From Neoechinorhynchus agilis (lineage: Eukaryota; Animalia; Acanthocephala), in the NCBI GenBank assembly GCA_051530055.1, contig CM121341.1, positions 8,534,784 to 8,598,783 of the forward strand: a DNA stretch of 64,000 bases, read 5' to 3'. Both the position numbers and the translations under genes were made by a program. A model generated the notes under the pieces. That model saw nothing but the letters and a program-made list of their open reading frames with translations, searched no databases and was not told the DNA's origin. The number at the start of each line of letters is the position of its first letter. Positions within the stretch are counted from its first letter, which is position 1. Shown one piece after another: positions 14 through 54,150 of the stretch.

Positions 14-2048
14 CTACAAGACCGCTTGCTGAGTGCGTATCTTCAAAACTCGCTGATGGAGATGTTCGGTGAGGTGCCCGTATTTTGTCCTCCTCTGATA
101 CATTTGCAAGTTATTCGCCCTCCACACTTCAGGGTTTAAAGTTGAGGCATCCGCAAAGTTCAACCCAAACAGAAATTCCTGCATGTTCCGTCCCTCAAAG
201 ACACTCCACTTCGACAGTTGAACTGAGAATGGCCATATCCTCCTTCGCCCACGGCTATGGTCATTGGGCTTCGTCCTCAGCACCTAAAGGATATGATGTC
301 GTTCTCAGTTGGAGATGCAGACCACTCGCTTGCTACCAATCTTTGTCGACTAGTCGACCTTTTCATCGAAGCAAATTTACATCCTCGGGCAGTTGAGTTA
401 TTTTTTGGCGCATCTTTGTGCGCTTTGAACAAAAAGACTAGTGGGATTCGTTTTATCGCCGTTGGCTCTGTTCTACGTCGGCTCGCAAGTAAAATCCTTT
501 GCAAACGTATTGCAGAAGGGATAGGGCAGCAACTTCACCCAGTCCAACTGGGATTCTGCACACCCTGCGGGTCCGAAGCCATTGTCCACGCACTCCGCCA
601 CTTCATCACCAATAGTTCAACGCAGTGTGTGATTTTGAAGTGCGACTTTACAAATGCCTTCAATTCCATTCACCGTGCCGCTCTCAGCGCAGAGCGAAAT
701 CGTCAAAAGTTTTCGAAATCTGGCACCCGGTTTAGAATTGATCACTCTATTCCGGCTGAGTCTTCTAGGGAGTTGCGTTTTTGATTCTAATTTGGAAAAT
801 GAAATCGACCATATACTCCCGAACATCACGATTGGCTCTATTCATGATCAAGAATACCCTCTTCATCCCGAAACTACTTTATAAACTGCGTACGGCTTCC
901 TTCTTCACGCACGTCGATAAGTTAAAGAAGCTCGATGACATTGTGACGGCCTGTCCCGAGCACATTTTAAATATCAAGCTATCAGACGAGGCCCGGCGAC
1001 AAGCTTCATTGCCGGTGTCGTCGGGTGCCTTGGGTATTCGAAAAACAGCAGATGTGTCGTTTTCCGCGTTTTTATGATCATTCGATGGGATTCGGGATCT
1101 GATAAAACGTATATTGGGATCCCAGTTCTGTTTAGCGGACGAATTTCTAGTAGCGGTCCAGGAATTGTGGGAGAAGACGGATTACAACCAAGTTCCCATG
1201 AATGGCCTAAAGCAATCTATCTGGCATAAATCTTTAGTCGCCCGAGCTCATAGTTCTCTAATTTCAGGCTCTCGCGACGAGGTCGACCGGGCTAGATTGC
1301 TGGCAGTCTCTGCAAGAACCGGGAGCATGGTTAGAAGCCTTACTCCGTGGGAACGCTCTTCGTAGACGAAGCAGTTCGGATCGGAGTGTCCCTCAGATTA
1401 GGTCTACCGATTTGTGTCGAACATCGTTGCCAGCGTGGAATGATCGTGGATCCACTGGGGAGACATGGCCTTGTTTGCAACAAATCAGGGGGTCGTTTCT
1501 CACGACATGCTGAAATGAACGACGTAATTTCGTGTGCCCTGAATACGATAAACGTCCCAAACATTATAGAGCCAAGCAAATTGTGCCGACTCGATGGTTG
1601 TCGTCCGGATGACGTCACCGTATTCCCGTGGCTAGAAAGCAAATGTCTTCTCTGGTTCGCCACGTTCGCGGCAAGTAACAGGAGGTTTGTGGTGCAGTCC
1701 CCAGGGGGAGCGGCAACTGCCGCGGAGGACCACAAGGTGGCGAAATATAAAGAATTAAGTGGGTTTCACGTTTTTGTACCCTTTGGAGTGGAGACTCTTG
1801 GTGCGCACGGTAGCTCGGCACTTGGATTTACGAAGGAGTTATCGAGTAGACTCCAGGCCAAGACAGGGGACACAAGAGCTGGTGCCTTCCTGCGCCAAAA
1901 CATTGTGTGGTCGCGATCCAAAGAGGAAACGCAGCGAGTGTGGTCGCGATCACTGAGGGGAGAGTGATGCCTCTTTTTCGTGGACGGTGGTGATTATTGA
2001 AACGTTTTGTTGTTGTGTGTGTAAATGAAAGAGTTGCTTTCAAAAAAA
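14..2048 (+). mobile_element. CRE-like (RLE-type) non-LTR retrotransposon, frameshifted and internally deleted
   Basis: RT motifs (FFGASLCALNKKTSGIRFIAVGSVLRRLASK; VQLGFCTPCGSEAIVH; CDFTNAFNSIHR), then Cys/His knuckle (CVEHRC..HGLVC..FSRH) and restriction-like endonuclease motifs (RPDDVTVFPW; FVPFGVETLG); ends in an A run at ~2048. Confidence 0.85.
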
Positions 2049-2094
2049 ATAAAGATATCAAGCTTTTGGTGTTTAAAATAATCACTTTTTGATC

Positions 2095-2215: not shown

Positions 2216-2381
2216 ATTGTAAAACAACAACTAACGTTTTTAGGCTGCAAAGCTAAAACATTAAAAATCCGCTTAAAGCTTACAAGTTTCACTAGATATC
2301 TGAGGTGCACATTTTGATGGCTTGTATTTTCCTTGAAATAAAACGTGTCACTAAAGAATTTTTTATTGTCGCCCGTATTCG

Positions 2382-2453
2382 GCGTTGGTGGAGTAATGGA
2401 TAGCATGGTTGCCTTCTAAGCAACCGATCCGGGTTCGAATCACGGCCAACGCA
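2382..2453 (+). tRNA. tRNA gene with tRNA-Gly(TCC)-type body but TCT anticodon (2415-2417)
   Basis: 72-nt cloverleaf: acceptor stem GCGTTGG/CCAACGC with A73; anticodon stem GTTGC/GCAAC, loop CTTCTAA; T-loop TTCGAAT; A and B boxes present; one mismatch each in the D stem (A11-A24) and T stem (G52-A62). Confidence 0.85.
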
Positions 2454-2759
2454 CCTCTCGATTGAACGTCGATCATCGGGTTTCATCAATTCGTAGAATA
2501 AAACCATAAAACAGTTTGAATTTTTCGCGAATTATTCATGGAAGATTGTGTTTATTTAAGCTAGTCAATATTTTTAATGACATTTCATAAATTCAGAATA
2601 ACAAAGATATTCTCTTCTCTTTATTTTAAATTCAAAGGGCCGCAAAGATATTCACTTTCCTATTGACAGGCTGCATCGAGACTAACTCAGAGTTTTCGTG
2701 GATGCGTCTTTTTGCGTTCCCTAGACTAGTGTTTTCCTATGGTGATGTTTCCGAGGGAT

Positions 2760-3180: not shown

Positions 3181-6100
3181 TGTCAGAAAGAGGAGCTCAA
3201 CAAAAAAGTTCTTTATGGTCGGTGGTGGAGGCGTCGGTGATGGAGGCATCGGTGCCGTCGGTAATGGAGGCATCGGTGTCGTCGGTGGTGGAGGCATCGG
3301 TGTCGTCGGTGATGGAGGCATCGGTGATGGATGCATCGGTGTCGTCGGTGGTGGAGGCATCGGTGTCGTCGGCGGTGGAGGCGTCGGTGATGGATGCATC
3401 GGTGTCGTCGGTGGTGGAGGCATCGGTGCCGTCGGTGGTGTAGGCATCGGTGTCGTCGGTGGTGGAGGCGTCGGTGATGGATGCATCGGTGTCGTCGGTG
3501 GTGTAGGCATCGGTGTCGTCGGTGGTGGAGGCGTCGGTGATGGATGCATCGGTGTCGTCGGTGGTGGAGGCGTCGGTGATGGATGCATCGGTGTCGTTGG
3601 TGGTGTAGGCATCGGTGCCGTCGGTGGTGTAGGCGTCGGTGATGGAGGCATCGGTGATGGATGCATCGGTGTCGTCGGTGGTGTAGGCATCGGTGCCGTC
3701 GATGGTGTAGGCGTCGGTGATGGAGGCATCGGTGTCGTCGGTGGTGTAGGCAACGGTGTCGTCGGTGGTGTAGGCATCGGTGATGGAGGCATCGGTGCCG
3801 TCGGTGGTGTAGGCATCGGTGTCGTCGGCGGTGGAGGCGTCGGTGATGGATGCATCGGTGTCGTCGGTGGTGGAGGCGTCGGTGATGGATGCATCGGTGT
3901 CGTCGGTGGTGTAGGCATCGGTGTCGTCGGTGATGTAGGCATCGGTGTCGTCGGTGGTGGAGGCGTCGGTGATGGATGCATCGGTGTCGTCGGTGGTGTA
4001 GGCATCGGTGTCGTCGGTGGTGGAGGCATCGGTGCCGTCGGTGGTGTAGGCAACGGTGTCGTCGGTGGTGTAGGCATCGGTGATGGAGGCATCGGTGCCG
4101 TCGGTGGTGTAGGCATCGGTGTCGTCGGCGGTGGAGGCGTCGGTGATGGATGCATCGGTGTCGTCGGTGGTGGAGGCGTCGGTGATGGATGCATCGGTGT
4201 CGTCGGTGGTGTAGGCATTGGTGTCGTCCGTGATGTAGGCATCGGTGTCGTCGGTGGTGGAGGCGTCGGTGATGGATGCATCGGTGTCGTCGGTGGTGTA
4301 GGCATCGGTGTCGTCGGTGGTGTAGACATCGGTGATGGAGGCATCGGTGTCGTCGGTGGTGTAGGCATCGGTGATGGAGGCATCGGTGCCGTCGGTGGTG
4401 TAGGCATCGGTGTCGTCGGTGGTGGAGGCGTCGGTGATGGATGCATCGGTGTCGTCGGTGGTGGAGGCATCGGTGTCGTCGGTGGTGGAGGCATCGGTGT
4501 CGTCGGTGGTGTAGGCATCGGTGATGGAGGCATCGGTGCCGTCGGTGGTGTAGGCATCGGTGTCGTCGGCGGTGGAGGCGTCGGTGATGGATGCATCGGT
4601 GTCGTCGGTGGTGGAGGCATCGGTGTCGTCGGTGGTGGAGGCATCGGTGTCGTCGGTGGTGGAGGCATCGGTGTCGTCGGTGGTGGAGGCATCGGTGTCG
4701 TCGGTGGTGGAGGCGTCGGTGATGGATGCATCGGTGTCGTCGGTGGTGTAGGCATCGGTGTCGTCGGTGATGTAGGCATCGGTGTCGTCGGTGGTGGAGG
4801 CGTCGGTGATGGATGCATCGGTGTCGTCGGTGGTGTAGGCATTGGTGTCGTCGGTGGTGGAGGCATCGGTGTCGTCGGTGGTGGAGGCGTCGGTGATGGA
4901 TGCATCGGTGTCGTCGGTGGTGGAGGCATCGGTGTCGTCGGTGGTGGAGGCGTCGGTGATGGATGCATCGGTGTCGTCGGTGGTGTAGGCATCGGTGATG
5001 GAGGCATCGGTGTCGTCGGTGGTGTAGGCATCGGTGATGGAGGCATCGGTGCCGTCGGTGGTGTAGGCATCGGTGTCGTCGGCGGTGGAGGCGTCGGTGA
5101 TGGATGCATCGGTGTCGTCGGTGGTGGAGGCATCGGTGTCGTCGGTGGTGGAGGCATCGGTGTCGTCGGTGGTGGAGGCATCGGTGTCGTCGGTGGTGGA
5201 GGCGTCGGTGATGGATGCATCGGTGTCGTCGGTGGTGTAGGCATCGGTGTCGTCGGTGGTGTAGGCATCGGTGTCGTCGGTGGTGGAGGCGTCGGTGATG
5301 GATGCATCGGTGTCGTCGGTGGTGTAGGCATCGGTGTCGTCGGTGGTGGAGGCATCGGTGTCGTCGGCGGTGGAGGCGTCGGTGATGGATGCATCGGTGT
5401 CGTTGGTGGTGGAGGCATCGGTGCCGTCGGTGGTGTAGGCATTGGTGTCGTCGGTGGTGGAGACGGCATCGATGTCATCGGTAGTGAAGGCATCGGTGTA
5501 TCGTCCTTTTTGTCGGACTTCTTCAGGTTGTTTCGCCAGTTTGTTGCTTCCGACGAAACGGACGAGATAAGCACCAAGGAACAAATAAAAATTATAGAGA
5601 GCTGCAGATTTCAACTTTGTTGGAGGACCCTCTCGGGGCAGCTTTAGTCGAGGCGTCGATTTGATTCTTTTACCTGAATAAAATTTAAGGTTCTTAAAAA
5701 TAAATTGCGAAAGGACAGCGTGTCCAAATCAACCGTCAATAACATCTCAGATGCCTGAGAACTGATGATCTCACTATTGTTTCTGGGAAAAGATTGAAAT
5801 TATGTTTGACTTTAGTACGACTTCTTTCGCCTGCAAAGCATATATGACTGATTGATTTCTTGGAAAATTTGATCAATGCAGAAATTTACGTTTGAACGAT
5901 TTTAAACTCCGGCTACTAAACGAAATCAAGAGGTATTTAAAGATTGTGCTTCCGAAATATCGGATTTAAAATAAAATCATTGTAATTTCTTTGATATAAA
6001 AAAACCGAAATGAGAAGTAGGAATGGCACTTTTTAATTTTGAGCTAAATATTGATTCTAGGGAAGCACAAAAATGCTTTTAACATTTGACGACAATATCG

Positions 6101-6837: not shown

Positions 6838-7462
6838 CTAAAAAGATACGGTAAATTGCAGGGAACGAACGCGAAAAGAAATGCTTTCCAATTTAATGGA
6901 AGCTGAATCTGTACCCTCCTGTGAGTTGAAGAACTTCCAATATCGTGTAATCTTCATTATAACATACAGAAAGGAAATCCAGCCATGAATGAAATTTCAC
7001 TTGCCAATGTCTCTCAAGAAATCTCGTTAATGAGGGTCATCTTCTCTATTCAAAAAAAGAGAACAAAATTGACTAAGGGAGACATTCGGTCAATTTCTCC
7101 CTAGATTTGTTGTTTAGAAGTCTTCATCCGGTAATGAGTTTATTAAAGACGTTCTGAGAACCTCCTAGGGTTCATCCTAAGTTTGCTTCTCAACCGAAGA
7201 TAATGAAACGTTTTCTACTGGGTCGAAGACTTCTAAACAACAAATTTATTTCCGATCAATTTCCCGCTAGAATTTTAATAAATTGTAAAGACGTTGTTCA
7301 TTTTTATGTGTTTTTTGGTGATGAGAGCCTCATTAGTCATTTCTTGAACGGTTTATGACTAATGAGGCGAGGATTCCTTTTTCGAAATATTTCCTAATAA
7401 TAAAGGAATCTTTCAAAAACCACTCAATATTGATTTATTGTTCTCAATATTTCGTTTGTTTG

Positions 7463-7547
7463 GTCGGACTTCTTCAGGTTGCTTGTAAGTTTTGAAATAT
7501 GTTGCTCGTATCTTTAATAACTTATAAGCAACTTGAAGAAGTCCGAC
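7463..7547. repeat. Short inverted-repeat (hairpin) element
   Basis: 22-bp arms GTCGGACTTCTTCAGGTTGCTT / AAGCAACTTGAAGAAGTCCGAC (1 mismatch); the arm sequence recurs at ~5512-5531. Confidence 0.7.
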
Positions 7548-7712
7548 AAAACAAGCCAAATATTTTTGAATTAATGAATCATGAAATGGTTAAAGGTTAA
7601 ACACCAACTTTAATTTCTATGAAATATACTCTGAGACTAGGGCATGGTTAAATTTTACAAGGTCCGTATTGTGTGCCAAAATTAGTCGTCAGAGGTTTTT
7701 AATTAATAAGAT

Positions 7713-9829: not shown

Positions 9830-12800
9830 ACGCCTACAACACTTCTAATGGAGGACAAAGACGTTCCTTCGCTTGGAACTCATCAATTGGAAAAGAAAAC
9901 AATTCTAACTCTCGAAGTGTTATTTAGAAGTCTTCAACCCGGTAAAGAACGCCCCTAATAAACTCTTTACCTGGTTAGACCTCTAGACAACAATTCAAAT
10001 GGAGGATAAAGATGTTCCTCCGCTTTTAACTTTTATAGATTGGAAAAGAAAAAAATTCTAACTTTGGAAGTGTTATTTCGAAGTCTTCATCCCAGCAGAG
10101 AACGTCTCTAAAAAACTCTTTACCAGCTTAAAGACTTCTAAACAACACTTCAATTGGAGGATAAAGATGTTCCTCCGCTTTTAACTTTTATAGATTGCAA
10201 AAGAAAATTCTAACTTTGGAAGTGTTATTTCGAAGTCTTCAACCCGGTAAAGAACGTCTCTAATAAACTCTTTACCGGGTTAAAGACTTCTAAACAACAC
10301 TTCAATTGGAGGATAAAGATGTTCCTCCGCTTTTAACTTTTATAGATTGGAAAAGAAAACAATTCTAACTTTGGAAGTGTTATTTAGAAGTCTTCAACCC
10401 GGTAAAGAACGTCTCTAATAAACTCTTTACCGGGTTAAAGACTTCTAAACAACACTTCTAATGGAGGATAAAGATGTTCCTCCGCTTGGAACTTTTATAG
10501 ATTGGAAAAGAAAACAATTCTAACTTTGGAAGTGTTATTTAGAAGTCTTCAACCCGGTAAAGAACGTCTCTAATAAACTCTTTACCGGGTTAAAGACTTC
10601 TAAACAACACTTCTAATGGAGGATAAAGATGTTCCTCCGCTTGGAACTCATCAATTGGAAAAGAAAACAATTCTAACTTTGGAAGTGTTATTTAGAAGTC
10701 TTCATCCCAGCAGAGAACGTCTCTAATAAACTCTTTACCGGGTTAAAGACTTCTAAACAACACTTCTAATGGAGGATAAAGATGTTCCTCCGCTTGGAAC
10801 TCATCAATTGGAAAAGAAAACAATTCTAACTTTGGAAGTGTTATTTAGAAGTCTTCAACCCGGTAAAGAACGTCTCTAATAAACTCTTTACCGGGTTAAA
10901 GACTTCTAAACAACACTTCTAATGGAGGATAAAGATGTTCCTCCGCTTGTAACTTTTATAGATTGGAAAAGAAAACAATTCTAACTTTGGAAGTGTTATT
11001 TAGAAGTCTTCAACCCGGTAAAGAACGTCTCTAATAAACTCTTTACCGGGTTAAAGACTTCTAAACAACACTTCTAATGGAGGATAAAGATGTTCCTCCG
11101 CTTGGAACTCATCAATTGGAAAAGAAAACAATTCTAACTTTGGAAGTGTTATTTAGAAGTCTTCAACCCGGTAAAGAACGTCTCTAATAAACTCTTTACC
11201 GGGTAAATGACTTCTAAACAACACTTCTAATGGAGGATAAAGACGTTCCTTCGCTTGGAACTCATCAATTGGAAAAGAAAACAATTCTAACTTTGGAAGT
11301 GTTATTTAGAAGTCTTCATCCCAGCAGAGAACGTCTCTAATAAACTCTTTACCGGGTAAAAGACTTCTAAACAACACTTCTAATGGAGGATAAAGACGTT
11401 CCTTCGCTTGGAACTCATCAATTGGAAAAGAAAACAATTCTAACTTTGGAAGTGTTATTTCGAAGTCTTCATCCCAGCAGAGAACGTCTCTAAAAAACTC
11501 TTTACCTGGTTAGACCTCTAGACAACAATTCAAATGGAGGATAAAGATGTTCCTCCGCTTTTAACTTTTATAGATTGGAAAAGAAAAAAATTCTAACTTT
11601 GGAAGTGTTATTTCGAAGTCTTCATCCCAGCAGAGAACGTCTAAAAAACTCTTTACCGGCTTAAAGACTTCTAAACAACACTTCAATTGGAGGATAAAGA
11701 TGTTCCTCCGCTTTTAACTTTTATAGATTGCAAAAGAAAATTCTAACTTTGGAAGTGTTATTTCGAAGTCTTCAACCCGGTAAAGAACGTCTCTAATAAA
11801 CTCTTTACCGGGTTAAAGACTTCTAAACAACACTTCTAATGGAGGATAAAGATGTTCCTCCGCTTTTAACTTTTATAGATTGGAAAAGAAAACAATTCTA
11901 ACTTTGGAAGTGTTATTTCGAAGTCTTCAACCCGGTAAAGAACGTCTCTAATAAACTCTTTACCGGGTTAAAGACTTCTAAACAACACTTCTAATGGAGG
12001 ATAAATGTTCCTCCGCTTGGAACTCATCAATTGGAAAAGAAAACAATTCTAACTTTGGAAGTGTTATTTAGAAGTCTTCAACCCGGTAAAGAACGTCTCT
12101 AATAAACTCTTTACCGGGTTGACTTCTAAACAACACTTCAATGGAGGATAAAGATGTTCCTCGCTTGGAACTCATCAATTGGAAAAGAAAACAATTCTAA
12201 CTTGGGAAGTGTTATTTAGAAGTCTTCATCCCAGCAGAGAACGTCTCTAATAAACTCTTTACCGGGTAAAAGACTTCTAAACAACACTTCTAATGGAGGA
12301 TAAAGACGTTCCTTCGCTTGGAACTCATCAATTGGAAAAGAAAACAATTCTAACTTTGGAAGTGTTATTTCGAAGTCTTCATCCCAGCAGAGAACGTCTC
12401 TAAAAAACTCTTTACCTGGTTAGACTCTAGACAACAATTCAAATGGAGGATAAAGATGTTCCTCCGCTTTTAACTTTTATAGATTGGAAAAGAAAAAAAT
12501 TCTAACTTTGGAAGTGTTATTTCGAAGTCTTCATCCCAGCAGAGAACGTCTAAAAAACTCTTTACCTGGTTAGACCTCTAGACAACAATTCAAATGGAGG
12601 ATAAAGATGTTCCTCCGCTTTTAACTTTTATAGATTGGAAAAGAAAAAAATTCTAACTTTGGAAGTGTTATTTCGAAGTCTTCATCCCAGCAGAGAACGT
12701 CTCTAAAAAACTCTTTACCGACTTAAAGACTTCTAAACAACACTTCAATTGGAGGATAAAGATGTTCCTCCGCTTTTAACTTTTATAGATTGCAAAAGAA

Positions 12801-12995
12801 AACAATTCTAACTTTGAAAGTGTCATTTATAAGTCTTCAACACGGTAAAGAATGTCTCTAATAAACTCTTTACCGGGTTAAAGACTTTTAAACAACATTT
12901 CTAATGGAGGATAAAGATTTTCCTCCGTTTGCAGCTTTTATAGATTGCAAGAGAAAGCAATTCTAACTTTGAAAGTGTTATTTAGAAGTCTTCAA
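9830..12995 (+). repeat. ~155-bp tandem satellite (~20 units), each unit with a 35-bp-arm hairpin
   Basis: Period measured 10381 to 10536; arms GAAGTGTTATTTAGAAGTCTTCAACCCGGTAAAGA / TCTTTACCGGGTTAAAGACTTCTAAACAACACTTC around a 15-nt loop. Confidence 0.95.
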
Positions 12996-13084
12996 CCGGT
13001 AAAAAATACTAATTTTATTATTTGTTGGATTGTCAACTGATTTTCTCGACCGCATGTATATAGTTCTTTTTTATATGTGAATTG

Positions 13085-14745: not shown

Positions 14746-16636
14746 AAAAAGAGAATCAGAAACTTTGCCGGGAAAAGAAGGTATTTAAAGGAACACGAAA
14801 AGCTAAATGTAATTCTCTCCCAAAATTCTGCATTTTTTGTGACCATTTTTTGATCTACTGGATAAATGTTCGCTATTTTGCCTCATTTTTGAATTGATCG
14901 ATTGTTAACTTTTAAATGACCACCGATTTGAGTACGTCGGAACGTCGATTTTATCCGAAAAAGCTCTACTGATCAATTTCCGTCGATTGAAAAGAGAGAA
15001 TCAGAAACTTTGCCGGGAAAAGAAGGTATTTAAAGGAACACGAAAAGCTAAATGTAATTCTCTCCCAAAATTCTGCATTTTTGTGACCATTTTTTGATCT
15101 ACTGGATAAATGTTCGCTATTTTGCCTCATTTTTGAATTGATCGATTGTTAACTTTTAAATGACCACCGATTTGAGTACGTCGGAACGTCGATTTTATCC
15201 GAAAAAGCTCTACTGATCAATTTCCGTCGATTGAAAAGAGAGAATCAGAAACTTTGCCGGGAAAAGAAGGTATTTAAAGGAACACGAAAAGCTAAATGTA
15301 ATTCTCTCCCAAAATTCTGCATTTTTTGTGACCATTTTTTGATCTACTGGATAAATGTTTGCTATTTTGCCTCATTTTTGAATTGATCGATTGTTAACTT
15401 TTAAATGACCACCGATTTGAGTACGTCGGAACGTCGATTTTATCCGAAAAAGCTCTGATCAATTCGTCGATTGAAAGGAATAGAAACTTGCGGGAAAGAA
15501 GGTATTTAAAGGAAACGAAAAGCTAAATGTAATTCTCTCCCAAATTCTGCATTTTTGTGACCATTTTTTGATCTACTGGATAAATGTTGCTATTTTGCCT
15601 CATTTTTGAATTGATCGATTGTTAACTTTTAAATGACCACCGATTTGAGTACGTCGGACGTCGATTTTATCCGAAAAAGCTCTACTGATCAATTTCCGTC
15701 GATTAAAAGAGAGAATCAGAAACTTTGCCGGGAAAAGAAGGTATTTAAAGGAAACGAAAAGCTAAATGTAATTCTCTCCCAAATTCTGCATTTTTTGTGA
15801 CCATTTTTTGATCTACTGGATAAATGTTGCTATTTTGCCTCATTTTTGAATTGATCGATGTTAACTTTTAAATGACCACCGATTTGAGTACGTCGGAACG
15901 TCGATTTTATCCGAAAAAGCTCTACTGATCAATTTCCGTCGATTAAAGAGAGAATCAGAAACTTTGCGGGAAAAGAAGGTATTTAAAGGAAACGAAAAGT
16001 AAATGTAATTCTCTCCCAAATTCTGCATTTTTGTGACATTTTTTGATCTACTGGATAAATGTTGCTATTTTGCCTCATTTTGAATTGATCGATGTTAACT
16101 TTAATGACACGATTTGAGTACGTCGAGTCGATTTTATCGAAAAAGCTCTACTGATCAATTTCGTCGATTAAAAGAGAATCAGAAACTTTGCCGGGAAAGA
16201 AGGTATTTAAAGGAACACGAAAAGCTAAATGTAATTCTCTCCCAAATTCTGCATTTTTGTGACCATTTTTTGATCTACTGGATAAATGTTGCTATTTTGC
16301 CTCATTTTTGAATTGATCGATTGTTAACTTTTAAATGACCACCGATTTGAGTACGTCGGAACGTCGATTTTATCCGAAAAAGCTCTACTGATCAATTTCC
16401 GTCGATTAAAAGAGAGAATCAGAAACTTTGCCGGGAAAAGAAGGTATTTAAAGGAACACGAAAAGCTAAATGTAATTCTCTCCCAAAATTCTGCATTTTT
16501 GTGACCATTTTTTGATCTACTGGATAAATGTTTGCTATTTTGCCTCATTTTTGAATTGATCGATTGTTAACTTTTAAATGACCACGGATTTGAGTACGTC
16601 AGAACGTCGATTTTATCCTAAAAAGCTCTACTGATC
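14746..16636 (+). repeat. ~245-bp tandem array (~7.7 units)
   Basis: Periods 245 and 244 bp measured on the first units; middle units carry many 1-nt deletions. Confidence 0.95.
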
Positions 16637-16839
16637 GATTGCTTTCTATTGGAAGTTTTGTCATCCCGGATTTGCCACCCCAAATTCAGGGTGGAAAAAA
16701 GAAAGTACCTTCCCTTCCCCCCTCGAAGATAATAATCCAAGTTTTGAACCGGGGCCGTATGCCTACACAAAGATACTGAATTAAAGTTACTGGCTGACCA
16801 GAACTTTGGATGGAAAAAGTGGGTTATTTTGCTCAAAGC

Positions 16840-24730: not shown

Positions 24731-25491
24731 TGAAATCGATAACCTTACGAGTGATTGTTTTTGTATGATAGAGATTCAAAAAATAAAATATTGAAAGCTT
24801 TTACGTTACTATTATCAAAAATATAAGTAGAATAGAAATTTTTCGATTGATAAAATTGCCTTTGTTTAAATAATTTTTCGTTGAACTATTCAGCTGCAGT
24901 TACTAATTATCAATAATCCACAATTCGATACTAAATAAATAATTTGTTTTTTAGCGTTTTTTATGTGTTCAATTTCACAAGCTCTAGAGCTTACGTATCA
25001 TCACCTACAACAATATTTTGAGGCTCAATGCTTGCACGATTCAATCTTTCGATGTCTTTAACTTCCCTCGTGTTCGTTGCGATAAACCATTAGGTAATCA
25101 CAAGTTTAATCTATAAAAATTATTTTCCAGCCTAGTAGAGTTTCATTAAAAACGCAATAATTTGAATTTTCGCGTTTTAGCTTTTGCTAACTCGGTGGGT
25201 AGACATTTTGTATGAGTCCAAAATGTTAAAAGAGCTACTTTGTTTAGTCAGTTTTGATAAGATCTTTTATTTGTCATGAAAATCCAAAGTGTTCCTTTTA
25301 CAAACAACCGTAGCGCCGATTATCGTTGTATAAAATCAATAAGCAATTTCAGTCTTTTTACTTTCTGGGATTTACTTCAATTATTTTAACAAGAACGATT
25401 AAATTTCATCACTGTGCCTTTTTCGTGTATCATTAATTATTTCTAGAAAAAACAGGGAAAATTACGCAAAAATTGAAAAGCTCAAGAAAAA

Positions 25492-27220
25492 ATGTCAAAT
25501 TCAATTCCAAATGTGGACATTGAAGATATCTTGCGAAAGATGTCGTCAATTAATTTATATTTCACTAGAACAAGTTTATGGCAGACTTGGATGTTTTTGA
25601 TCAATTCATCCTTCCGTATTATGTCATCTATGACTTCGCTTATTGATTATTTCACGAATAATGCTGATTATACATGTTGGATCCCGGATAATGTATCGAT
25701 GAGCGACGCAATTCCAATTAATGCAGATGGAAAATTCGAAAAATGTAAAGTCTTTGAGAATTATACTTCACTGTCAAATAAAATAATACCCTGCCCTAAC
25801 GGCTACATCCACCCGCTACCCGATGACAGATCGCTGGTGTTCACCTTTGATCTATACTGCGATCGGGAATACTTAAAGGATATTCCACAGTCAGCCTTCT
25901 TCGTAGGAGCAGCAATCGGTTCAGCCGTTTTGTCAATGTTTGGCGACAATTTTGGTAAGAAACCAATTGCTCTTATCGGAACTTGGCTCAATATCATATG
26001 CGGAATCGGCTGTGCGCTTTCAAATACCATCTAAATCGGATGCTTCCGATCAGCTAAAACCATTATATCTTTCTTATTGATCGGAATCACCTTGATATTT
26101 ATTTATAGTATTCCGTTTTTTATCTGGAATTTGCTGGCAGATGTGTACTCTCTCTTCTTATATTCTCAGTGTTGAAGTCTTTGCAGCGCAATACCGAGGC
26201 ATCCAGTGTATAATGGCTAATTTCATTTGGGGTATAGGAATGTTAATGTTGGATTTAGTCGCTTATTTTGTTAGAGGATGGCGGAATCTTTATTTGACAG
26301 TTTATGTTCCAGTCGCAATAACTGTACTCTATTATTGGATTATGAGAGAAAGTTTATTTTGGCTAGCTGTTCATAAACGACAAGCTGATGTAAATAAAAT
26401 ATTAACCGAAGCATACAAAATGAATTCAACGAAACAACAAGATCAAATGTTTCTTTCACTTGACGACGATATCGGACTAATAGCCGATGATTCAGAGGCC
26501 CCAACTAGTGTACCGCTGCCAAATCGGATAAAGAAAAACTTAAAAGCAATGTTTTCGTCAATTGTGTTTCCATATTCGTTGTTTTGTGGATGTCTACTGA
26601 TTTCATTGGCTTCTTTTGGTTACTTCGGATTAACTCTATCAGCATCCGCATTTTCGTCCAACGTCTACCTCCATTTCTTTATTACAACTATTATTGAAAT
26701 TCCACAGTTTGTCTCATCTAGCGTTGCAACGAAATTCTTCGGACGAAAAACTCTAAGTCTTTTCAGCAATCTTTTGCTTGTACTCATATCTATAATATTT
26801 GCTATCCTTCCTTCAAGCAATAAAGAAGCTTTGAATGTCTTCAATCACATTGCAAAGTTGTCGGCAGCGGCTAATGCTGATATTGTTTGGATTTTCGCAA
26901 CAGAGCTATTTCCAACGAGGTACAGACAATTTGGATTAGGAATTGCGGTCTCTTGGAGTCGAATCATAACAGCTTTTAGTCCTTTCTTGAAAGATCTACT
27001 GACTTCTCAAAGACTCGTAGCTATGCTTTCGATTGGAGGTTTTGCACTTTTGGTTGCCATCCTGCTAATCTTTTTACCTGAGACAAAATACCATACGATG
27101 GCAGAACTTTCTGATATGAAGGGGCTACGACAATGTGCAAGAGAAACGTTTAGTTGGATGCCGAGGAAGCCAAAAGATGAACAAGTATCGGAGCTTCAGG
27201 ATATAACAAATGGAGATTAG
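25492..27220 (+). CDS. SLC22-family organic cation/anion transporter (MFS), copy 1; exons 25492-26032 and 26097-27220
   Basis: TFDLYCDR, DNFGKKP, FRFLSG, FATELFPTRYRQFGLG and FLPETK motifs; exons joined by a 64-nt AA-AT intron giving SNTIYLFIVFRFLSG. Confidence 0.9.
26033..26096 (+). other. 64-nt non-canonical intron T|AA...AT| with internal inverted repeat
   Basis: No GT donor between the end of the conserved upstream coding block and the downstream frame; TTCCGATCA / TGATCGGAA inverted repeat. Confidence 0.75.
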
Positions 27221-27879
27221 TGCGAATGTCCAGGAATTGATTTAAAGAAATAAAAGGACATTTTGTGACGGATTGTAGGTAGAGATTAAAATTGACACAG
27301 CTAAGATATTTTTAAAGAAAGGTTTCCGGTTGTGTATTGGATAGCGATATTTTGCTGCACGAATAATGTAGTCGATTCGTCCAAAGCGTTCATGAGAAAA
27401 ATATTTTCAATCCCTCGTCGACCGTAGTTAAGTTGTTCAATCAGCATTTGCGATTGGATTAATTAATAAGACCACATTTTGCAGATTCCGCTATCTTCAA
27501 TAGAATCATCATGTCCAAAAAGTCCAGCGTAATATTGAGCTGTGAGTTCGCTGTTAAAATAGCAATCGGCTGGAATCATCTTAAACTGCTTTCTTTGTGT
27601 GCCATTCACCGTGTTCGTTTGGCCCAGGGACGATGGGTACACGGTCGGGTACTTCCAAACCGATTCTCTGCTTGGAGGATGAATTCGGCAGATAATACCC
27701 GTTCGAAATTGGTTTAAGTCGAAGGATATCAATAAGAAAGGGGCAGATGCTACAACGGGTTGTTAAAGCTACGATTCTAAATCACTGAAGTTACGATCGC
27801 AAGGCATAGAATGATTATTAGCGATGTTGAAGAAAGCGATAATAACTCTGCCAGCATTATGGACACGACCTCCGCCGAC

Positions 27880-29090
27880 AACGAGCTGGAACGTTGAATT
27901 TGGTAATAAAGAATTCGATGAAGTCCGAAAATCCAAAACGTATTCGGTACAAGAATCACGCAAGAGACTTAGGAAATAGAGAGATATCAACAGATTTGGT
28001 TTGATGGCTTCACAGTCCTTCACCAGTCTATTATTCAGGAATCATACAAACGACGATTTAGGGAATTGAAATTTAAAGAAAATTCCATGGAGTCCGAAAA
28101 TCCAAAATGTATTCGGTGCAAGAATCACGCAAGAGACTTAGGAAATAGAGAGATATCAACAGATTTGGTTAGATGGCTTCACAGTCCTTCTGTAGTCTAT
28201 TATTCAGGAATCATACAAACGACGATTTGGAGAATTCAATTTAAAAGAAAATTCCATAGAGTCAGAAAATCCAAAACGTATAGGAAATAGAGAGATATCA
28301 CCAAATTTGGTTTGATGGCTTCACAGTCCTTCTGTAGTCTATTATTCAGAAATCATACAAACGACGATTTAGGGAATTGAAATTTAATTAAAATCCATGG
28401 AGTCAGAAAATCCAAAACGTATTCGGTACAAGAATCACGCAAGAGACCTAGGAAATAGAGAGATGTCACCAGATTTGGTTAGATGGCTACCACATTCCTT
28501 CACCAGTCTATTATTCAGGAATCATACAAACGACGATTTGGAGAATTCAATTTAAAGAAAATTCCATGAAATTAGACAGAAAATCCAAAGCGTAGAGGAA
28601 ATAGAGAGATATCACCAAATTTGGTTTGATGGCTTCACAGTCCTTCTGTAGTCTATTATTCAGGAATCATACAAACGACGATTTAGGAATTAGAATTTAA
28701 TTAAAATCCATGGGAATTGAAAAATCCAAAACGTATTCGGTACAAGAATCACGCAAGAGACCTAGGAAATAGAGAGATGTCACCAGATTTGGTTAGATGG
28801 CTACACAGTCCTTCACCAGTCTATTATTCAGGAATCATACAAACGACGACTTGGGGAATTCAATTTAAAAGAAAATTCCATAGAGTCAGAAAATCCAAAA
28901 CGTATAGGAAATAGAGAGATATCACCAGATTTGGTTCGATGGCTTCACAGTCCTTCTGTAGTCTATTATTCAGGAATCATACAAACGACAACTATGGAAT
29001 TGGAATCGAAAATTTCATGGAGTCAGAAAATCCAAAGCGTATTCATTACAAGAATCACGCAAGAGACTTAGGAAATAAAGAATGCGCGTG
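27880..29090 (+). repeat. Complex tandem repeat with alternating ~140 and ~170 bp units
   Basis: Recurring GAAAATCCAAAACGTA..., AAGAATCACGCAAGAGAC and GGCTTCACAGTCCTTC blocks; start of the array is duplicated at ~63667-64000. Confidence 0.9.
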
Positions 29091-34259: not shown

Positions 34260-36600
34260 ATAAACCCGTCAAATAGAATTAGACTCCACGAGGGATCTAA
34301 AATACATGACAGCAGTCCAGTTATGCGGGCAATTCGCGTCTCTTAAAATCAGGTCATCGTATGTACGACAGTTCCCTTTGCCTTTACGATACAATGTCGT
34401 TGGCTTCCCGAAAAGGAACTGTTGCACGACCTGTGGGCTAGATGCCTCAGACCGAATTATATTGCCCGTGAACTGCAGTCGTCTGCGGCGCAAATATTCA
34501 CTAGGCGGTTGGACTCCGGCTCTCTTATACAGTGCTTTGTTGGTCACTTTATCTGACCATCTAACCTTGAACGCCGCACGTAAGAGAGATGAATGATTTT
34601 GACCCAACTGCCTCGTCGCCGTTGGTGACAGTGTCCAGGTCTCTGTATTGTAGTAGAGAATGCTCTCAATTAGAGTCCTGAACAGCTGCGAACGGAGTTC
34701 ATCCGGCAAAGACTAACTGTCAAACAGTGGTTTAAGTTGCCCCATTGCTCTTCAAGTTATTGCTCTCCGTCGGCTGACATCCGCACTCACCTTAGGAACG
34801 ACAGCTCCCAGATTGCTCAACGCCATTCGGCCCTTCGCCAGAGACTGTATGCGCGACATGTGGAATCGTCAAGAATTCCGTCTTTTTCGAGTTGATAGTC
34901 AGACCAATCATACTCGCCCTCTCCCGCCCTGCAGAACACCTGAAGTTGTGAAAAAGTATTCTGTCAAACCGTCAGCTGTCTTTACGGCGGACCTTGTGTT
35001 TTTATATAACGCCATAACGGATGTGACAATGATCGGGGGCACTCCATACTCCTTTAGGATACCCCCAATCATCGTTCGATTTACCGAATCGAAAGCACGA
35101 CGGAAATAAACAAATACCAGCGTCACATCCGTTTGATGAATTCGTGCCTCCTCGAGGATCCTCCTCAAAGCCAATATGTGCTCTGTGGTGCCTCGACCTT
35201 TCCTGAAGCCGTTCGATTCAATTCTTAGAAACGGTTGGAGGATTGGCAGAATTCGGCGTCTCAAAATGCTGCTGAAAAGTTTTGCCGTGTTGGACATCAA
35301 GGATATATCTCTGTAGTCCTCCACCTTTGTCGAGCGGCATTTCTTGGGGATCATTGTTAAATGCGCCGTTTGCCAGATTTGGGGTACTGAGCAACCATTT
35401 ATTATGCCATTCATTATCGGTATGATTTTCTGGCAATAGATTCAAACCTCATTACCTCTGCCATTATCCCATCTGGGCCTGATGCACGTCCCGCACGCAT
35501 CATTTTCGCCGCAGCGATCGCTTCCTTCGTGGGAATCGGTCCAGTGAAGTATGCCTCAGTGCTTGGGACGATTGTGCCTTTTGGAAGTGCAGGACTCACT
35601 TCCAAAGACGATAATGGCGAATTGAGAATTTCCGCAAAATAATTTGCGATTATCTTTTTCTGATATCCGGGGAGGGACCTTCAATCAAAGTTGGCTGTCT
35701 TTGGGATCTTCCTGTGAGAGTGTTTATCGCTCTCCATGCTAAGGAGGTACGAACAAAGCCTTCCTTATATGCGATCCCGCGAACTGCATCTTCCATCGAA
35801 GCTTTCTGCTTTTCATTATAGGCGTTGGCAAGTTCAAGACTTGCAATGCGAGCCTCAGATCATTTTCCTCTTTTTCTTAGAGTTTTGATCTGCTCAGCCA
35901 TTGCCATAAATTAACAGTCCTCCTGCCATATAACCTTTGCAGCTTTTATACGCCTCATTTTTGGGAGGGTTTTCTCGGCCGCTTCGGTCACTGCGTCGCA
36001 GATTGACTTGTAATAAAGATCAATATCCGTTTCAGCAGCTGGCATCGAGCTCGGTTGATTCTCTAGTTCGATATCGAACTCTTTCCTCTTCTCCTCATTA
36101 GCGAGGGCGCCATAGAACGGACGTGGTGAATGCTGAGGTATATGGAACAACGAGTCACTCATGCTCAACTGACACATCACCAACTTGCATAGAGAATTCT
36201 CGACCGAAGCTTTATGCTGACACGAAGGATTCGGTCAGTTATAATACTGCATAGTGCTGAGTTTCGGAGGCGGGGTGATAAACAAACGCCTACACCTCCA
36301 TTTCCTCGATTGTCCGCAGATAGGAAGGATAATGACCAGCCTCCTCCTAAATCCTCCTGATTTACGTCTGTGTCTTACTGGCCTCTTTTGCGCAATTCTT
36401 GTAAAACACAAGATCCATTCTGGCGTCCCTTCCCAATTTGGTCAGGGTTCCCCTACGCCATTGCGCTCGCAGACTGCTACAATTCAAGGATCCGATTCGT
36501 AGTATGCTTCTATTAGGAATAGCTAAGCCAAAGGGCTCACGGCTGTAAGCGCCACCTGAACAGTCCGTACCCACCACGGTGATAAGCTTCGACTGACGCT
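34260..36600 (-). mobile_element. RTE-clade non-LTR retrotransposon, frameshifted with internal deletions
   Basis: APE N-terminus (LRIGSLNCSSL), RT (IPKK..YRDISLMSNTAKLFSSIL; FRKGRGTTEHI; GVLQG) and C-terminal LFRTLIESILYYNTETWTL. Confidence 0.85.
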
Positions 36601-41869: not shown

Positions 41870-44800
41870 CGTCGTTCTCTCTTTCTCAACCTAAGCCCTT
41901 TTATCTCTATAAAACATATGATCGTACAGCTTAACATCGTTCTTACCCGTCCATTTAGAGAATATACCGAGTTTTTTCGTCCTAAAAAACCTCCGATGCG
42001 TCCTGAGAGTTCACTTTTTAATTGTACGCCTCTTCTTTTTGCTTTATTTACTTTTCTCTCTCCCCACCTGAGCCCTTTATCTCTATAAAACTTCTTTTCA
42101 ATAGGAAGAACCTTTGAATTGTTCCTAAAAAATCGTAAATTCGTCTATTTAGAGAAAATACCGAGTTTTCGTCCTAAAAACCCTCTGATGCGTCCTGAGA
42201 GTTCACTTTTTAATTGTACGTCTCTTCTTTTTGCTTTATTTACTTTTCTCTCTAACCACCTGAGCCCTTTTATCTCTATAAAACTTCTTTTCAATAGGAA
42301 GAACCTTTGAATTGTTCCTAAAAATCGTAAATTCGTCCATTTAGAGAAAATACCGAGTTTTTTCGTCCTAAAAAAACTTAATGCGTCCTGAGAGTTCACT
42401 TTTTAATTGTACGTCTCTTCTTTTTACTTTATTTACTTTTCTCTCTCCCCACCTGAGCCCTTTTATCTCTATAAAACTTCTTTTCAATAGGAAGAACCTT
42501 TGAATTGTTCCTAAAAAATCGTAAATTCGTTCATTTAGAGCAAATACCGAGTTTTTTCGTCCTAAAAAAACCCTCCGATGCGTCCTGAGAGTTCACTTTT
42601 TAATTGTACGTCTCTTCTTTTTCCTTTATTTACTTTTCTCTCTCCCCACCTGAGCCCTTCTATCTCTATAAAACTTCTTTTCAATAGGAAGAACCTTTGA
42701 ATTGTTCCTAAAAATCGTAAATTCGTCCATTTAAGAGAAAATACCGAGTTTTTCGTCCTAAAAACACTCTGATGCGTTCTGAGAGTTCACTTTTTAATTA
42801 TACGTCTCTTCTTTTTGCTTTATTTACTTTTCTCTCTCCCCACTTGAGCCCTTTTATCTCTATAAAACTTCTTTTCAATAGGAAGAACCTTTGAATTGTT
42901 CCTAAAAAATCGTAAATTCGTCCATTTAGAGAAAATACCGAGTTTTTCATCCTAAAAAAACTTAATGCGTCCTGAGAGTTCACTTTTTAATTGTACGTCT
43001 CTTCTTTTTACTTTATTTACTTTTCTCTCTCCCCACCTGAGCCCTTTTATCTCTATAAAACTTCTTTTCAATAGGAAGAACCTTTGAATTGTTCCTAAAA
43101 AATCGTAAATTCGTTCATTTAGAGCAAATACCGAGTTTTTTCGTCCTAAAAACCTCCGATGCGTTCTGAGAGTTCACTTTTTAATTGTACGTCTCTTCTT
43201 TTTGCTTTATTTACTTTTCTCTCTCCCCACTTGAGCCCTTTTATCTCTATAAAACTTCTTTTCAATAGGAAGAACCTTTGAATTGTTCCTAAAAATCGTA
43301 AATTCGTCCATTTAGAGCAAATACCGAGTTTTTTCGTCCTAAAAAAACCTCCGATGCGTTCTGAGAGTTCACTTTTTAATTGTACGTCTCTTCTTTTTGC
43401 TTTATTTACTTTTCTCTCTCCCCACTGAGCCCTTTTATCTCTATAAAACTTCTTTTCAATAGGAAGAACCTTTGAATTGTTCCTAAAAATCGTAAATTCG
43501 TCCATTTTAAGAAAAATACCGAGTTTTTTCGTCCTAAAAACACTCTGATGCGTTCTGAGAGTTCACTTTTTAATTGTACGTCTCTGCTTTTTGCTTTATT
43601 TACTTTTCTCTCTAACCACCTGAGCCCTTTTATCTCTATAAAACTTCTTTTCAATAGGAAGAACCTTTGAATTGTTCCTAAAAAATCGTAAATTCGTCTA
43701 TTTAGAGCAAATACCGAGTTTTTTCGTCCTAAAAACACTCTGATGCGTTCTGAGAGTTCACTTTTTAATTGTACGTCTCTTCTTTTTGCTTTATTTACTT
43801 TTCTCTCTCCCCACTTGAGCCCTTTTATCTCTATAAAACTTCTTTTCAATAGGAAGAACCTTTGAATTGTTCCTAAAAATCGTAAATTCGTCCATTTAGA
43901 GAAAATACCGAGTTTTTTCATCCTAAAAAAACCCTCCGATGCGTCCTGAGAGTTCACTTTTTAATTGTACGTCTCTTCTTTTTGCTTTATTTACTTTTCT
44001 CTCTCCCCACCTGAGCCCTTTTATCTCTATAAAACTTCTTTTCAATAGGAAGAACCTTTGAATTGTTCCGAAAAAATCGTAAATTCGTCCATTTAGAGAA
44101 AATACCGAGTTTTTTCATCCTAAAAAAACCCTCTGATGCGTCCTGAGAGTTCACTTTTTAATTGTACGTCTCTTCTTTTTCCTTTATTTACTTTTCTCTC
44201 TCCCCACCTGAGCTTTTTTATCTCTATAAAACTTCTTTTCAATAGGAAGAACCTTTGAATTGTTCCTAAAAATCGTAAATTCGTCCATTTAGAGCAAATA
44301 CCGAGTTTTTTCATCCTAAAAAAACCCTCTGATGCGTCCTGAGAGTTCACTTTTTAATTGTACGTCTCTTCTTTTTCCTTTATTTACTTTTCTCTCTCCC
44401 CACCTGAGCCCTTCTATCTCTATAAAACTTCTTTTCAATAGGAAGAACCTTTGAATTGTTCCTAAAAAATCGTAAATTCGTCCATTTAGAGAAAATACCT
44501 AGTTTTTTCGTCCTAAAAACCCTCTGATGCGTCCTGAGAGTTCACTTTTTAATAATACGTCTCTTCTTTTTGCTTTATTTACTTTTCTCTCTCCCCACCT
44601 GAGCCCTTTTATCTCTATAAAACTTCTTTTCAATAGGAAGAACCTTTGAATTGTTCCTAAAAATCGTAAATTCGTCCATTTAGAGAAAATACCGAGTTTT
44701 TTCGTCCTAAAAACCCTCTGATGCGTCCTGAGAGTTCACTTTTTAATTGTACGTCTCTTCTTTTTGCTTTATTTACTTTTCTCTCTCCCCACCTGAGCCC

Positions 44801-46950
44801 TTCTATCTCTATAAAACTTCTTTTCAATAGGAAGAACCTTTGAATTGTTCCTAAAAATCGTAAATTCGTCCATTTAGAGAAAATACCGAGTTTTTCATCC
44901 TAAAAACCCTCCGATGCGTCCTGAGAGTTCACTTTTTAATTGTACGTCTCTGCTTTTTGCTTTATTTACTTTTCTCTCTCCCCACCTGAGCCCCTTTATC
45001 TCTATAAAACTTCTTTTTAATAGGAAGAACCTTTGAATTGTTCCTAAAAAATCGTAAATTCGTCCATTTAGAGAAAATACCGAGTTTTTCATCCTAAAAA
45101 CCCTCTGATGCGTCCTGAGAGTTCACTTTTTAATTATACGTCTCTTCTTTTTGCTTTATTTACTTTTCTCTCTAACCACCTGAGCCCTTTTATCTCTATA
45201 AAACTTCTTTTCAATAGGAAGAACCTTTGAATTGTTCCTAAAAAATCGTAAATTCGTCTATTTAGAGAAAAATACCGAGTTTTCATCCTAAAAACTTAAT
45301 GCGTCTGAGAGTTCACTTTTTAATTGTACGTCTCTTCTTTTTACTTTATTTACTTTTCTCTCTCCCCACCTGAGCCTTTTATCTCTATAAAACTTCTTTT
45401 CAATAGGAAGAACCTTTGAATTGTTCCTAAAAATCGTAAATTCGTCCATTTAGAGAAAATACCGAGTTTTTTCGTCCTAAAAACACTCTGATGCGTCCTG
45501 AGAGTTCACTTTTTAATTGTACGTCTCTTCTTTTTGCTTTATTTACTTTTCTCTCTCCCCACCTGAGCCCTTTTATCTCTATAAAACTTCTTTTCAATAG
45601 GAAGAACCTTTGAATTGTTCCTAAAAATCGTAAATTCGTCCATTTAGAGAAAATACCGAGTTTTTTCGTCCTAAAAAACCCTCCGATGCGTCCTTAGAGT
45701 TCACTTTTTAATTGTACGTCTGCTTTTTGCTTTATTTACTTTTCTCTCTCCCCACCTGAGCCCCTTTATCTCTATAAAACTTCTTTTCAATAGGAAGAAC
45801 CTTTGAATTGTTCCTAAAAAATCGTAAATTCGTCTATTTAGAGAAAATACCGAGTTTTTCATCCTAAAAAAACTTAATGCGTCCTGAGAGTTCACTTTTT
45901 AATTGTACGTCTCTTCTTTTTGCTTTATTTACTTTTCTCTCTCCCCACCTGAGCCCTTTTATCTCTATAAAACTTCTTTTCAATAGGAAGAACCTTTGAA
46001 TTGTTCCTAAAAAATCGTAAATTCGTCCATTTAGAGAAAATACCGAGTTTTTTCGTCCTAAAAAACCCTCCGATGCGTCCTTAGAGTTCACTTTTTAATT
46101 GTACGTCTCTTCTTTTTACTTTATTTACTTTTCTCTCTCCCCACTTGAGCCCTTTTATCTCTATAAAACTTCTTTTCAATAGGAAGAACCTTTGAATTGT
46201 TCCTAAAAATCGTAAATTCGTCCATTTAGAGAAAATACCGAGTTTTTCGTCCTAAAAAACCCTCCGATGCGTCCTTAGAGTTCACTTTTTAATTGTACGT
46301 CTCTTCTTTTTACTTTATTTACTTTTCTCTCTCCACCAGAGCCCTTTTATCTCTATTAAACTTCTTTTCAATAGGAAGAACCTTTGAATTGTTCCTAAAA
46401 AATCGTAAATTCGTCCATTTAGAGAAAATACCGAGTTTTTTCGGCCTAGAACCCTCTGATGCGTCCTGAGAGTTCACTTTTTAATAATACGTCTCTTCTT
46501 TTTGGTTTATTTACTTGTCTCTCTAACCACCTGAGCCCTTTTATCTCTATAAAACTTCTTTTCAATAGGAAGAACCTTTGAATTGTTCCTAAAAAATCGT
46601 AAATTCGTCCATTTAGAGAAAATACCGAGTTTTTCGGCCTAGAACACTCTGATGCGTAATGAGAGTTCACTTTTTAATTGTACGTCTCTTCTTTTTGGTT
46701 TATTTACTTGTCTCTCTCCCCACCTGAGCCCTTTTATCTCTATAAAACTTCTTTTCAATAGGAAGAACCTTTGAATTGTTCCTAAGAATCGTAAATTCGT
46801 CCATTTAGAGAAAATACCGAGTTTTTTTTCGTCCTAAAAACACTCTGATGCGTCCTGAGAGTTCACTTTTTAATTGTACGTCTCTTCTTTTTGCTTTATT
46901 TACTTGTCTCCCCACCTGAGCCCTTGAGTTTTTTCACCCTAAAAGCTCGT
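41870..46950 (+). repeat. ~194-bp pyrimidine-rich tandem satellite (~26 units)
   Basis: Periods of 193-197 bp measured on successive ATAGGAAGAACC anchors. Confidence 0.95.
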
Positions 46951-53802: not shown

Positions 53803-54150
53803 AGCAACAGGAGGTTTGTGGTGCAGTCCCCAGGGGGAGCGGCAACTGCCGCGGAGGACCACAAGGTGGCGAAATATAAAGAATTAAGTAGGTTTCACGT
53901 TTTTGTACCCTTTGGAGTGGAGACTCGGGGTGCGCTCGGAAGAAGGAGTTATGCAGAGTAGACTCCAGGCCAAGACAGGGAACACAAGAGCTGGTGCCTT
54001 CCTGCGCCAAAACATTGTGTGGTCGCGATCCAAAGAGGAAACGCAGCGAGTGTGGTCGCGATCACTGAGGGAAGCTCTTCTTCGTGGACGGTGGTGATTG
54101 TTGAAACGTTTTGTTGTTGTGTGTGTAAATGAAAGAGTTGCTTTCAAAAA
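53803..54150 (+). mobile_element. 5'-truncated CRE-like copy
   Basis: Near-identical to ~1678-2048 with small deletions; same A-run 3' end. Confidence 0.9.

Follow-up and report, generated by a model that had tools for sequence, protein, structure and literature searches.

Changes of anticodon in nuclear tRNA genes, alloacceptor changes among them, have been catalogued in eukaryotes (Rogers & Griffiths-Jones 2014, PMC3923123). A later survey places most nuclear alloacceptor shifts on terminal branches and judges them to be young pseudogenes (Velandia-Huerto et al. 2016, PMC4981973). The gene described here, which combines a tRNA-Gly(UCC)-type body with the anticodon UCU, is an event of this known kind, a nuclear tRNA anticodon shift. 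Like the catalogued alloacceptor shifts, it appears to be a duplicate that keeps the body of one isotype and has gained the anticodon of another by a point substitution. The catalogued shifts are defined by synteny between species, whereas the present case is known from the sequence of one acanthocephalan. No Gly(UCC)-to-Arg(UCU) shift is named in the portions of text from PMC3923123 and PMC4981973 on which this comparison is based.

A second point of reference is provided by the nev-tRNAs of nematodes (Hamashima et al. 2012, cited in PMC3923123). These tRNAs and the present gene are alike in being nuclear and in having an anticodon and a body that point to different amino acids. What sets the nev-tRNAs apart is their long variable arm, their charging with leucine and their conservation across nematodes.

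The combination of glycine with UCU also occurs in tunicate mitochondria, where AGR codons are read as glycine by a tRNA-Gly(UCU) that is encoded in the mtDNA. We know of no AGR=Gly code outside tunicates. The likeness to the present gene ends with that combination: the tunicate tRNA is mitochondrially encoded and serves an AGR=Gly code, whereas our gene is nuclear and the mitochondria of acanthocephalans are annotated with AGR as serine and with tRNAs of their own. The published acanthocephalan mitogenomes, including those of two Neoechinorhynchus species, are annotated with the invertebrate mitochondrial code and contain 22 tRNA genes, among them trnG(ucc), trnR(ucg) and trnS1 (PMC11460826). 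By this literature, tunicate-type decoding of AGR as glycine is absent from the host lineage.

The gene lies on CM121341.1, a 19.4-Mb chromosome of assembly GCA_051530055.1 from Neoechinorhynchus agilis (Acanthocephala). The published assembly of this species comprises 46.2 Mb with an N50 of 16.4 Mb and three large scaffolds, and is accompanied by 74 individual mRNA-seq libraries (PMC12690905). The stretch that we analysed, a 64-kb portion of the chromosome, is called the window. Scans of public collections for the Gly(UCC)-type 5' end combined with the worm's anticodon arm bearing TCY gave no match among JGI metagenome contigs, few of which are of animal origin; nor did a scan for the same body with TCY among viral contigs, where animal contigs are also few, and these blanks carry little weight. 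A looser TCT pattern had one match in the JGI metagenomes (L001), on a GC-rich contig in which ARAGORN finds no tRNA, and this was discarded as a chance match.

Structure and descent of the tRNA body

The features of the gene and of its immediate surroundings are collected in Table 1. The gene is a full-length match to the Rfam tRNA family RF00005 (model positions 1-71), scoring 50.3 bits where the gathering threshold is 29 (E value 8e-8), and it is the sole tRNA of the window. It has no intron. The 7-bp acceptor stem and the 5-bp anticodon stem are perfect, the base at position 73 is A, and the anticodon loop is the heptanucleotide CTTCTAA. ARAGORN reports a tRNA-Arg with anticodon tct. The body is of the glycine type, and tRNA-Arg calls made by anticodon-based tools for genes such as this one should be read with caution.

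Table 1. Features of the tRNA gene and of the sequence around it (window coordinates)
Feature	Position	Strand	Basis or remark
tRNA gene, tRNA-Gly(UCC)-type body with anticodon TCT	2382-2453	+	Rfam, ARAGORN, human alignment, DNA contig
Anticodon T34 C35 T36	2415-2417	+	the paralogue has C at position 36 (2417)
D loop AATGGATA, 8 nt, with A20 at 2400	2395-2402	+	sequence; also found in human tRNA-Arg-TCT-3-1
D-stem mismatch A11-A24	2392 and 2405	+	non-standard pair in cmscan; cloverleaf evaluation
T-stem mismatch G52-A62	2432 and 2442	+	non-standard pair in cmscan
A box (tRNA positions 8-19) TGGAGTAATGG	2389-2399	+	read from sequence; normal type
B box GGTTCGAATCA	2432-2442	+	10/11 consensus; last base, A62, deviates
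First run of at least four T after the gene (T5)	2521-2525	+	68 nt downstream; next T5 at 2571-2575
TTTTTTATT	2359-2367	+	15-23 nt upstream of the tRNA gene; from sequence only
Non-LTR retrotransposon remnant	257-2056	+	RVT_1 at 257-784; A-rich 3' end near 2048-2056; upstream of the tRNA gene
Dispersed-repeat piece	2257-2335		just upstream of the tRNA gene; outside the tRNA unit

For comparison, human Gly-TCC-2-1, Gly-GCC and Gly-CCC were taken as printed in PMC4928997, and the body of human Arg-TCT-3-1 as printed in PMC9126842 and PMC13267816. In an ungapped alignment the window tRNA is identical to Gly-TCC-2-1 at 58 of 72 positions, and all seven acceptor pairs together with A73 are the same in the two. 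The corresponding counts are 50/72 for Gly-GCC, 52/76 for Gly-CCC and 47/74 for Arg-TCT-3-1. With the presence of a TCC paralogue in the same genome (see below), these figures place the gene by descent in the tRNA-Gly(UCC) family, as a reading from the sequence alone had proposed in describing a Gly(TCC)-type scaffold with a TCT anticodon. Descent from tRNA-Arg(UCU) is not indicated: in the comparison with the human arginine gene all four stems differ.

The 14 differences from human Gly-TCC include several that are compensatory. Pair 28:42 has changed from C-G to U-A and pair 27:43 from G.U to G-C. The structure is likewise kept in the tertiary Levitt pair 15:48, now A:U instead of G:C, and in 26:44, which has gone from A/U to G/C. 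Because so many of the differences preserve structure, the body must descend from a tRNA lineage under constraint. The differences that do not preserve it are base 36, A62, a swap of D-stem positions 11 and 12, and loop bases 20, 20a and 59. In type, the anticodon arm and the T arm agree with those of Gly-TCC-2-1, whereas the anticodon itself is UCU rather than UCC, the T stem contains a mismatch, and the D loop reads AATGGATA where the human glycine tRNA has AGTGGTGA.

Two loops of the gene resemble those of an arginine tRNA. Human Arg-TCT-3-1 and the window tRNA have the same anticodon, the same CTTCTAA loop and the same D loop; A20, C35 and U36 are common to both. A15, which lies in the A box of the window tRNA, is likewise found in human Arg-TCT. 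The discriminators differ, being A73 in the window tRNA and G73 in the human one.

Two stem mismatches had been noticed earlier, and two were recovered by cmscan, A11-A24 and G52-A62. They do not weigh equally. Evaluated as free RNA, the cloverleaf of the window tRNA has an energy of -14.5 kcal/mol; with C at position 62 this becomes -21.6 kcal/mol, and the human Gly-TCC cloverleaf gives -20.4 kcal/mol under the same evaluation. The G52-A62 pair therefore costs about 7 kcal/mol, and the T-stem mismatch accounts for the energy deficit. Since human Gly-TCC has one D-stem mismatch of its own, A12-C23, only G52-A62 can be regarded as a clear defect.

Comparison with a tRNA-Gly(TCC) paralogue

Contigs from one DNA run and several RNA runs, all from one organism, were compared with 372 bases of the window (2232-2603) at 80% likeness. 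Two DNA contigs bear on the tRNA gene. The first, of 185 nt, covers 2271-2455 with 0 differences at a word depth of 109; it has T at 2417 and runs through the gene from one of the window's own flanks to the other, a support for T2417 that is not fully independent, as the DNA run was perhaps among those used for the assembly. The second, of 138 nt and depth 378, aligns to 2382-2450 with six differences (63/69 alike) and has C at 2417. The remaining 69 nt show no likeness to the 5' flank of the window copy and end in CAGAATACCCGGTTCGCTTCTTGAGCAACA. The five differences other than that at 2417 fall in 2382-2411 or 2421-2450; by a rule that we infer, differences are displayed only if they lie at least 31 letters from the end of the aligned piece. 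Because its 5' flank is different and it carries these five further differences, the C-bearing contig represents another locus of the genome, identified by its sequence as a tRNA-Gly(TCC) gene. The word depth of this paralogue is about 3.5 times that of the window copy.

The flanks of the window copy, 2336-2381 and 2454-2568, behave as single-copy sequence in the DNA run, matching only their own contigs at 80% likeness or above. In the same run, one contig, of depth about 124, matches the window over 2271-2300 and departs from it thereafter, and another of depth about 123 joins the window at 2569, while the depths of the tRNA-bearing contig and of the left flank are 109 and 308. Behind this pattern there may be haplotypes among the pooled worms that lack 2301-2568, or there may be repeats instead.

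We favour, with moderate confidence, the view that the window gene, present at a single locus, is a paralogue of tRNA-Gly(UCC) that has diverged and carries the substitution C36U, and that it is decaying or neutral. On this account a Gly(UCC) gene would have been duplicated and one copy would have drifted under relaxed constraint. A C-to-T transition at anticodon position 36 would then have converted UCC to UCU. Loss of C36 would remove a nearly universal glycine determinant and leave A20, C35, U36 and A73, the main arginine set; at the same stroke the 7-nt anticodon loop would become that of tRNA-Arg(UCU).

Drift of the window copy is indicated by its six differences in 69 positions from the TCC paralogue, by the broken pair shared by T stem and B box, and by the lack of a T run within 67 nt of the gene. 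From these signs we take it that the gene is probably in decay, or marginal, as a template of Pol III. The earlier suggestion of a pseudogene thus stands as the favoured reading, in a form that admits a neutral in-between state, and the repeat setting and the prior from the literature add their weight to the T-stem mismatch, the far terminator and the divergence. Against decay, the covariance score is well above the tRNA threshold, the promoter boxes have been kept, and the acceptor and anticodon stems are perfect. The D loop, with its A20, and the anticodon loop also fit arginine identity suspiciously well. If the D-loop bases proved to be derived in the window copy alone, they would point to selection. 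If the gene is a drifting paralogue and nothing else, it reflects no more than the ordinary turnover of tRNA genes.

Charging identity and transcription

Glycine identity depends on C35, C36 and pairs of the acceptor stem, and C35 and C36 are conserved as determinants in all domains; tRNA-Gly identity has not been studied in higher eukaryotes (PMC9976931). Arginine identity depends on A20, C35, U or G at 36, and A or G at 73, with A20 and C35 the main elements in mammals, plants and E. coli (PMC9976931). Judged by these elements, the window tRNA is divided. It retains the glycine acceptor stem (G1-C72, C2-G71 and G3-C70, with A73, as in human Gly-TCC) and lacks the NCC anticodon with C35 and C36, position 36 being U. 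The main arginine set is present: the sequence-only reading had listed A20, C35 and U36, all of which were found, and A73 completes them within a UCU tRNA. We therefore expect that the product, if made, would probably be charged mainly by ArgRS and would read AGA as arginine.

Modification of the anticodon loop would also fit. The sequence U36-A37 is the signature for t6A37, and in yeast mcm5U34 is found in both tRNA-Gly(UCC) and tRNA-Arg(UCU).

If AGA is read correctly by a tRNA charged by ArgRS, the C36U change would be near neutral and the copy could persist without harm. The step from Gly(UCC) to Arg(UCU) may therefore be an easy and harmless path, along which a single transition costs a determinant of glycine identity and makes the arginine set complete.

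AGA is a genuine arginine codon in this genome, as had been stated earlier for EF1A. The intronless EF1A gene at 47131-48498 contains seven AGA codons, and all seven align with arginine in human eEF1A2; they make up 7 of its 24 arginine codons.

These observations bear on a stronger interpretation, which we consider less likely: that a gene derived from Gly(UCC) has undergone working alloacceptor remoulding, and is expressed, arginylated by ArgRS and selected as an AGA decoder. A live switch from glycine to arginine, in which a tRNA with a glycine acceptor stem serves as an ArgRS-charged AGA decoder in a genome-reduced parasite, is possible but rather unlikely. On this view a single C36U change would suffice, because the worm's Gly(UCC) scaffold would already have had an arginine-type D loop with A20 as well as C35. 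In its favour are the complete set of major arginine determinants and the loss of the glycine determinant C36 (PMC9976931), the identity of the D loop and 7-nt anticodon loop to those of human Arg-TCT-3-1, the intact promoter boxes, acceptor stem and anticodon stem, the frequency of AGA among the arginine codons of EF1A, and the precedent of functional anticodon shifts in eukaryotes (PMC3923123). Against it are a T-stem mismatch that falls within the B box, a moderate Rfam score, a single locus amid repeat debris, and the finding that most such shifts are pseudogenes (PMC4981973). The proposal of arginine remoulding agrees with the sequence in that arginine determinants are present and C36 is gone; it and the pseudogene reading both remain standing. 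Were expression and arginylation demonstrated, the gene would offer the tRNA identity field a case of moderate interest, a clean alloacceptor switch made naturally and in one step in the nucleus of an animal.

The signals for Pol III transcription are mixed and bear on both readings. The A and B boxes expected of an active Pol III tRNA gene are present. The earlier description of both boxes as intact is correct for the A box; the B box falls short of it at the last base. A T run shortly after the 3' end is missing, the first lying at +68, which is far for tRNA genes, judged from other animals. This distance counts against a working remoulded gene, as does the B-box deviation. The trailer folds no better than shuffled sequences (z +1.2 and +0.3), and the idea of a dicistronic unit of tRNA and structured trailer was rejected on these values. 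Upstream, TTTTTTATT has a sequence that might act as a TATA-like element or might halt Pol III transcripts arriving from further upstream.

The RNA runs are mRNA-seq-like, with contigs of up to 14 kb, and mature tRNAs are not reported by runs of this kind. No RNA contig falls on 2336-2418, nor does one fall on the canonical TCC paralogue, so that these mRNA-seq-like data are uninformative for tRNAs. In three runs, contigs of depth about 3 begin at 2419, 2429 or 2456 and extend to 2561, 2576 or past 2603, beyond the T5 at 2521-2525; they carry no strand information. Read-through or trailer RNA from the tRNA gene may account for these contigs; so may a Pol II transcript of the adjacent repeat-coding region that has nothing to do with the tRNA gene. 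Their position at the 3' half of the gene, with none upstream, is compatible with transcription from the tRNA gene, and their start there can be counted in favour of a remoulded, expressed gene. On the other side, no RNA contig in these mRNA-seq-like runs crosses the anticodon.

One of the contigs has an unusual junction. In the contig covering 2419-2561 (depth 2.8), GGCGTTGGT, nine letters equal to 2381-2389, stands directly before 2419, and the 29 nt of 2390-2418 are missing. Such a skip could arise if reverse transcriptase jumped on a precursor, or if the contig is a chimera or derives from a deletion allele.

It is improbable that the tRNA acts instead as a cytosolic mistranslator, charged by GlyRS through its acceptor stem and inserting glycine for AGA at a level low enough to be tolerated. 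The retention of the first three acceptor pairs and A73 of human Gly-TCC would allow such charging, and the weight given to C36 comes from systems other than higher eukaryotes. However, C35 and C36 are conserved as glycine determinants in every tested system (PMC9976931), the AGA codons of EF1A lie strictly at conserved arginine positions, and the structural defects and poor terminator argue for a low output.

Surroundings of the gene and remaining alternatives

The tRNA gene lies in a region of repeat debris. Besides the remnant and the dispersed-repeat piece of Table 1, this includes a fragment at 2100-2200 related to the satellite at 14749-16640 and a 2.3-kb tandem repeat that begins at 3218. 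A second 3' fragment of the non-LTR remnant lies 51 kb away at 53803-54163 (89% alike), and a further reverse transcriptase fragment is found at 34908-35414 on the minus strand. In the DNA run the repeat piece at 2257-2335 is covered by at least five other contigs, 80-90% alike, which then diverge from the window. One copy of this repeat lies inside a 2.8-kb RNA contig of depth 200.

The tRNA gene might instead be the head of a tRNA-derived SINE or other repeat, and the long trailer before the first T5 does resemble a SINE body. This is very improbable. The flanking sequences on both sides are single-copy in the DNA run at the 80% level, the trailer has no notable fold, the hammerhead core CTGATGA is absent within 3 kb of the gene, and the 64-kb window contains no second copy. 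Membership of a tRNA-derived SINE family, with its many copies and common body, was rejected on the single-copy flanks and the lack of another copy in the window.

That a normal tRNA-Gly(TCC) gene was misassembled or miscalled is still harder to maintain, and we give this idea hardly any credence. Its appeal is that part of the DNA depth reads TCC, a result that the sequence-only reading had said would indicate a pseudogene or a miscalled base. In the DNA run, TCC occurs only on the paralogue contig, with its other 5' flank and five more differences, whereas the exact 185-nt contig with the window's own flanks has T, and an error at 2417 was rejected on these grounds.

The initial suggestion that the gene encodes a tRNA-Gly(UCU) that mitochondria import for the decoding of AGR as glycine has a probability close to nil: the analogy with tunicate mitochondria is its sole support, and since the host is an acanthocephalan, a group whose mitogenomes are annotated with the invertebrate code rather than AGR=Gly and have 22 tRNA genes including their own trnG(ucc) and trnS1 (PMC11460826), the rationale for import falls by a condition that the suggestion itself had set, namely that the mtDNA use AGR as glycine. 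A mitochondrial link is neither needed nor supported, and the gene has no bearing on the evolution of mitochondrial codes.

Several other features of the window were recorded in passing. A tandem repeat of 2.3 kb at 3218-5499 has units of 24, 63 and 87 nt built on a 24-nt base unit and is open in three frames on both strands; its minus strand would encode an 804-aa Pro/Thr-rich repeat protein of the TTPMPPPP type, for which there is no Pfam match. A hairpin at 7446-7564 has 55-nt arms, 85% complementary, and a 9-nt loop, and a related piece of 26-33 nt is found at 5501-5533. Satellite arrays occupy 9836-13007, 14749-16640 and 41948-46925, with periods of about 152, 235 and 194 bp, respectively, and about 200 bp separate the end of the last from the start of the intronless EF1A gene. 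Finally, 24941-28213 and 60729-64000 form a direct duplication of 3.27 kb, 99.9% identical, that carries an SLC22/MFS-type transporter gene.
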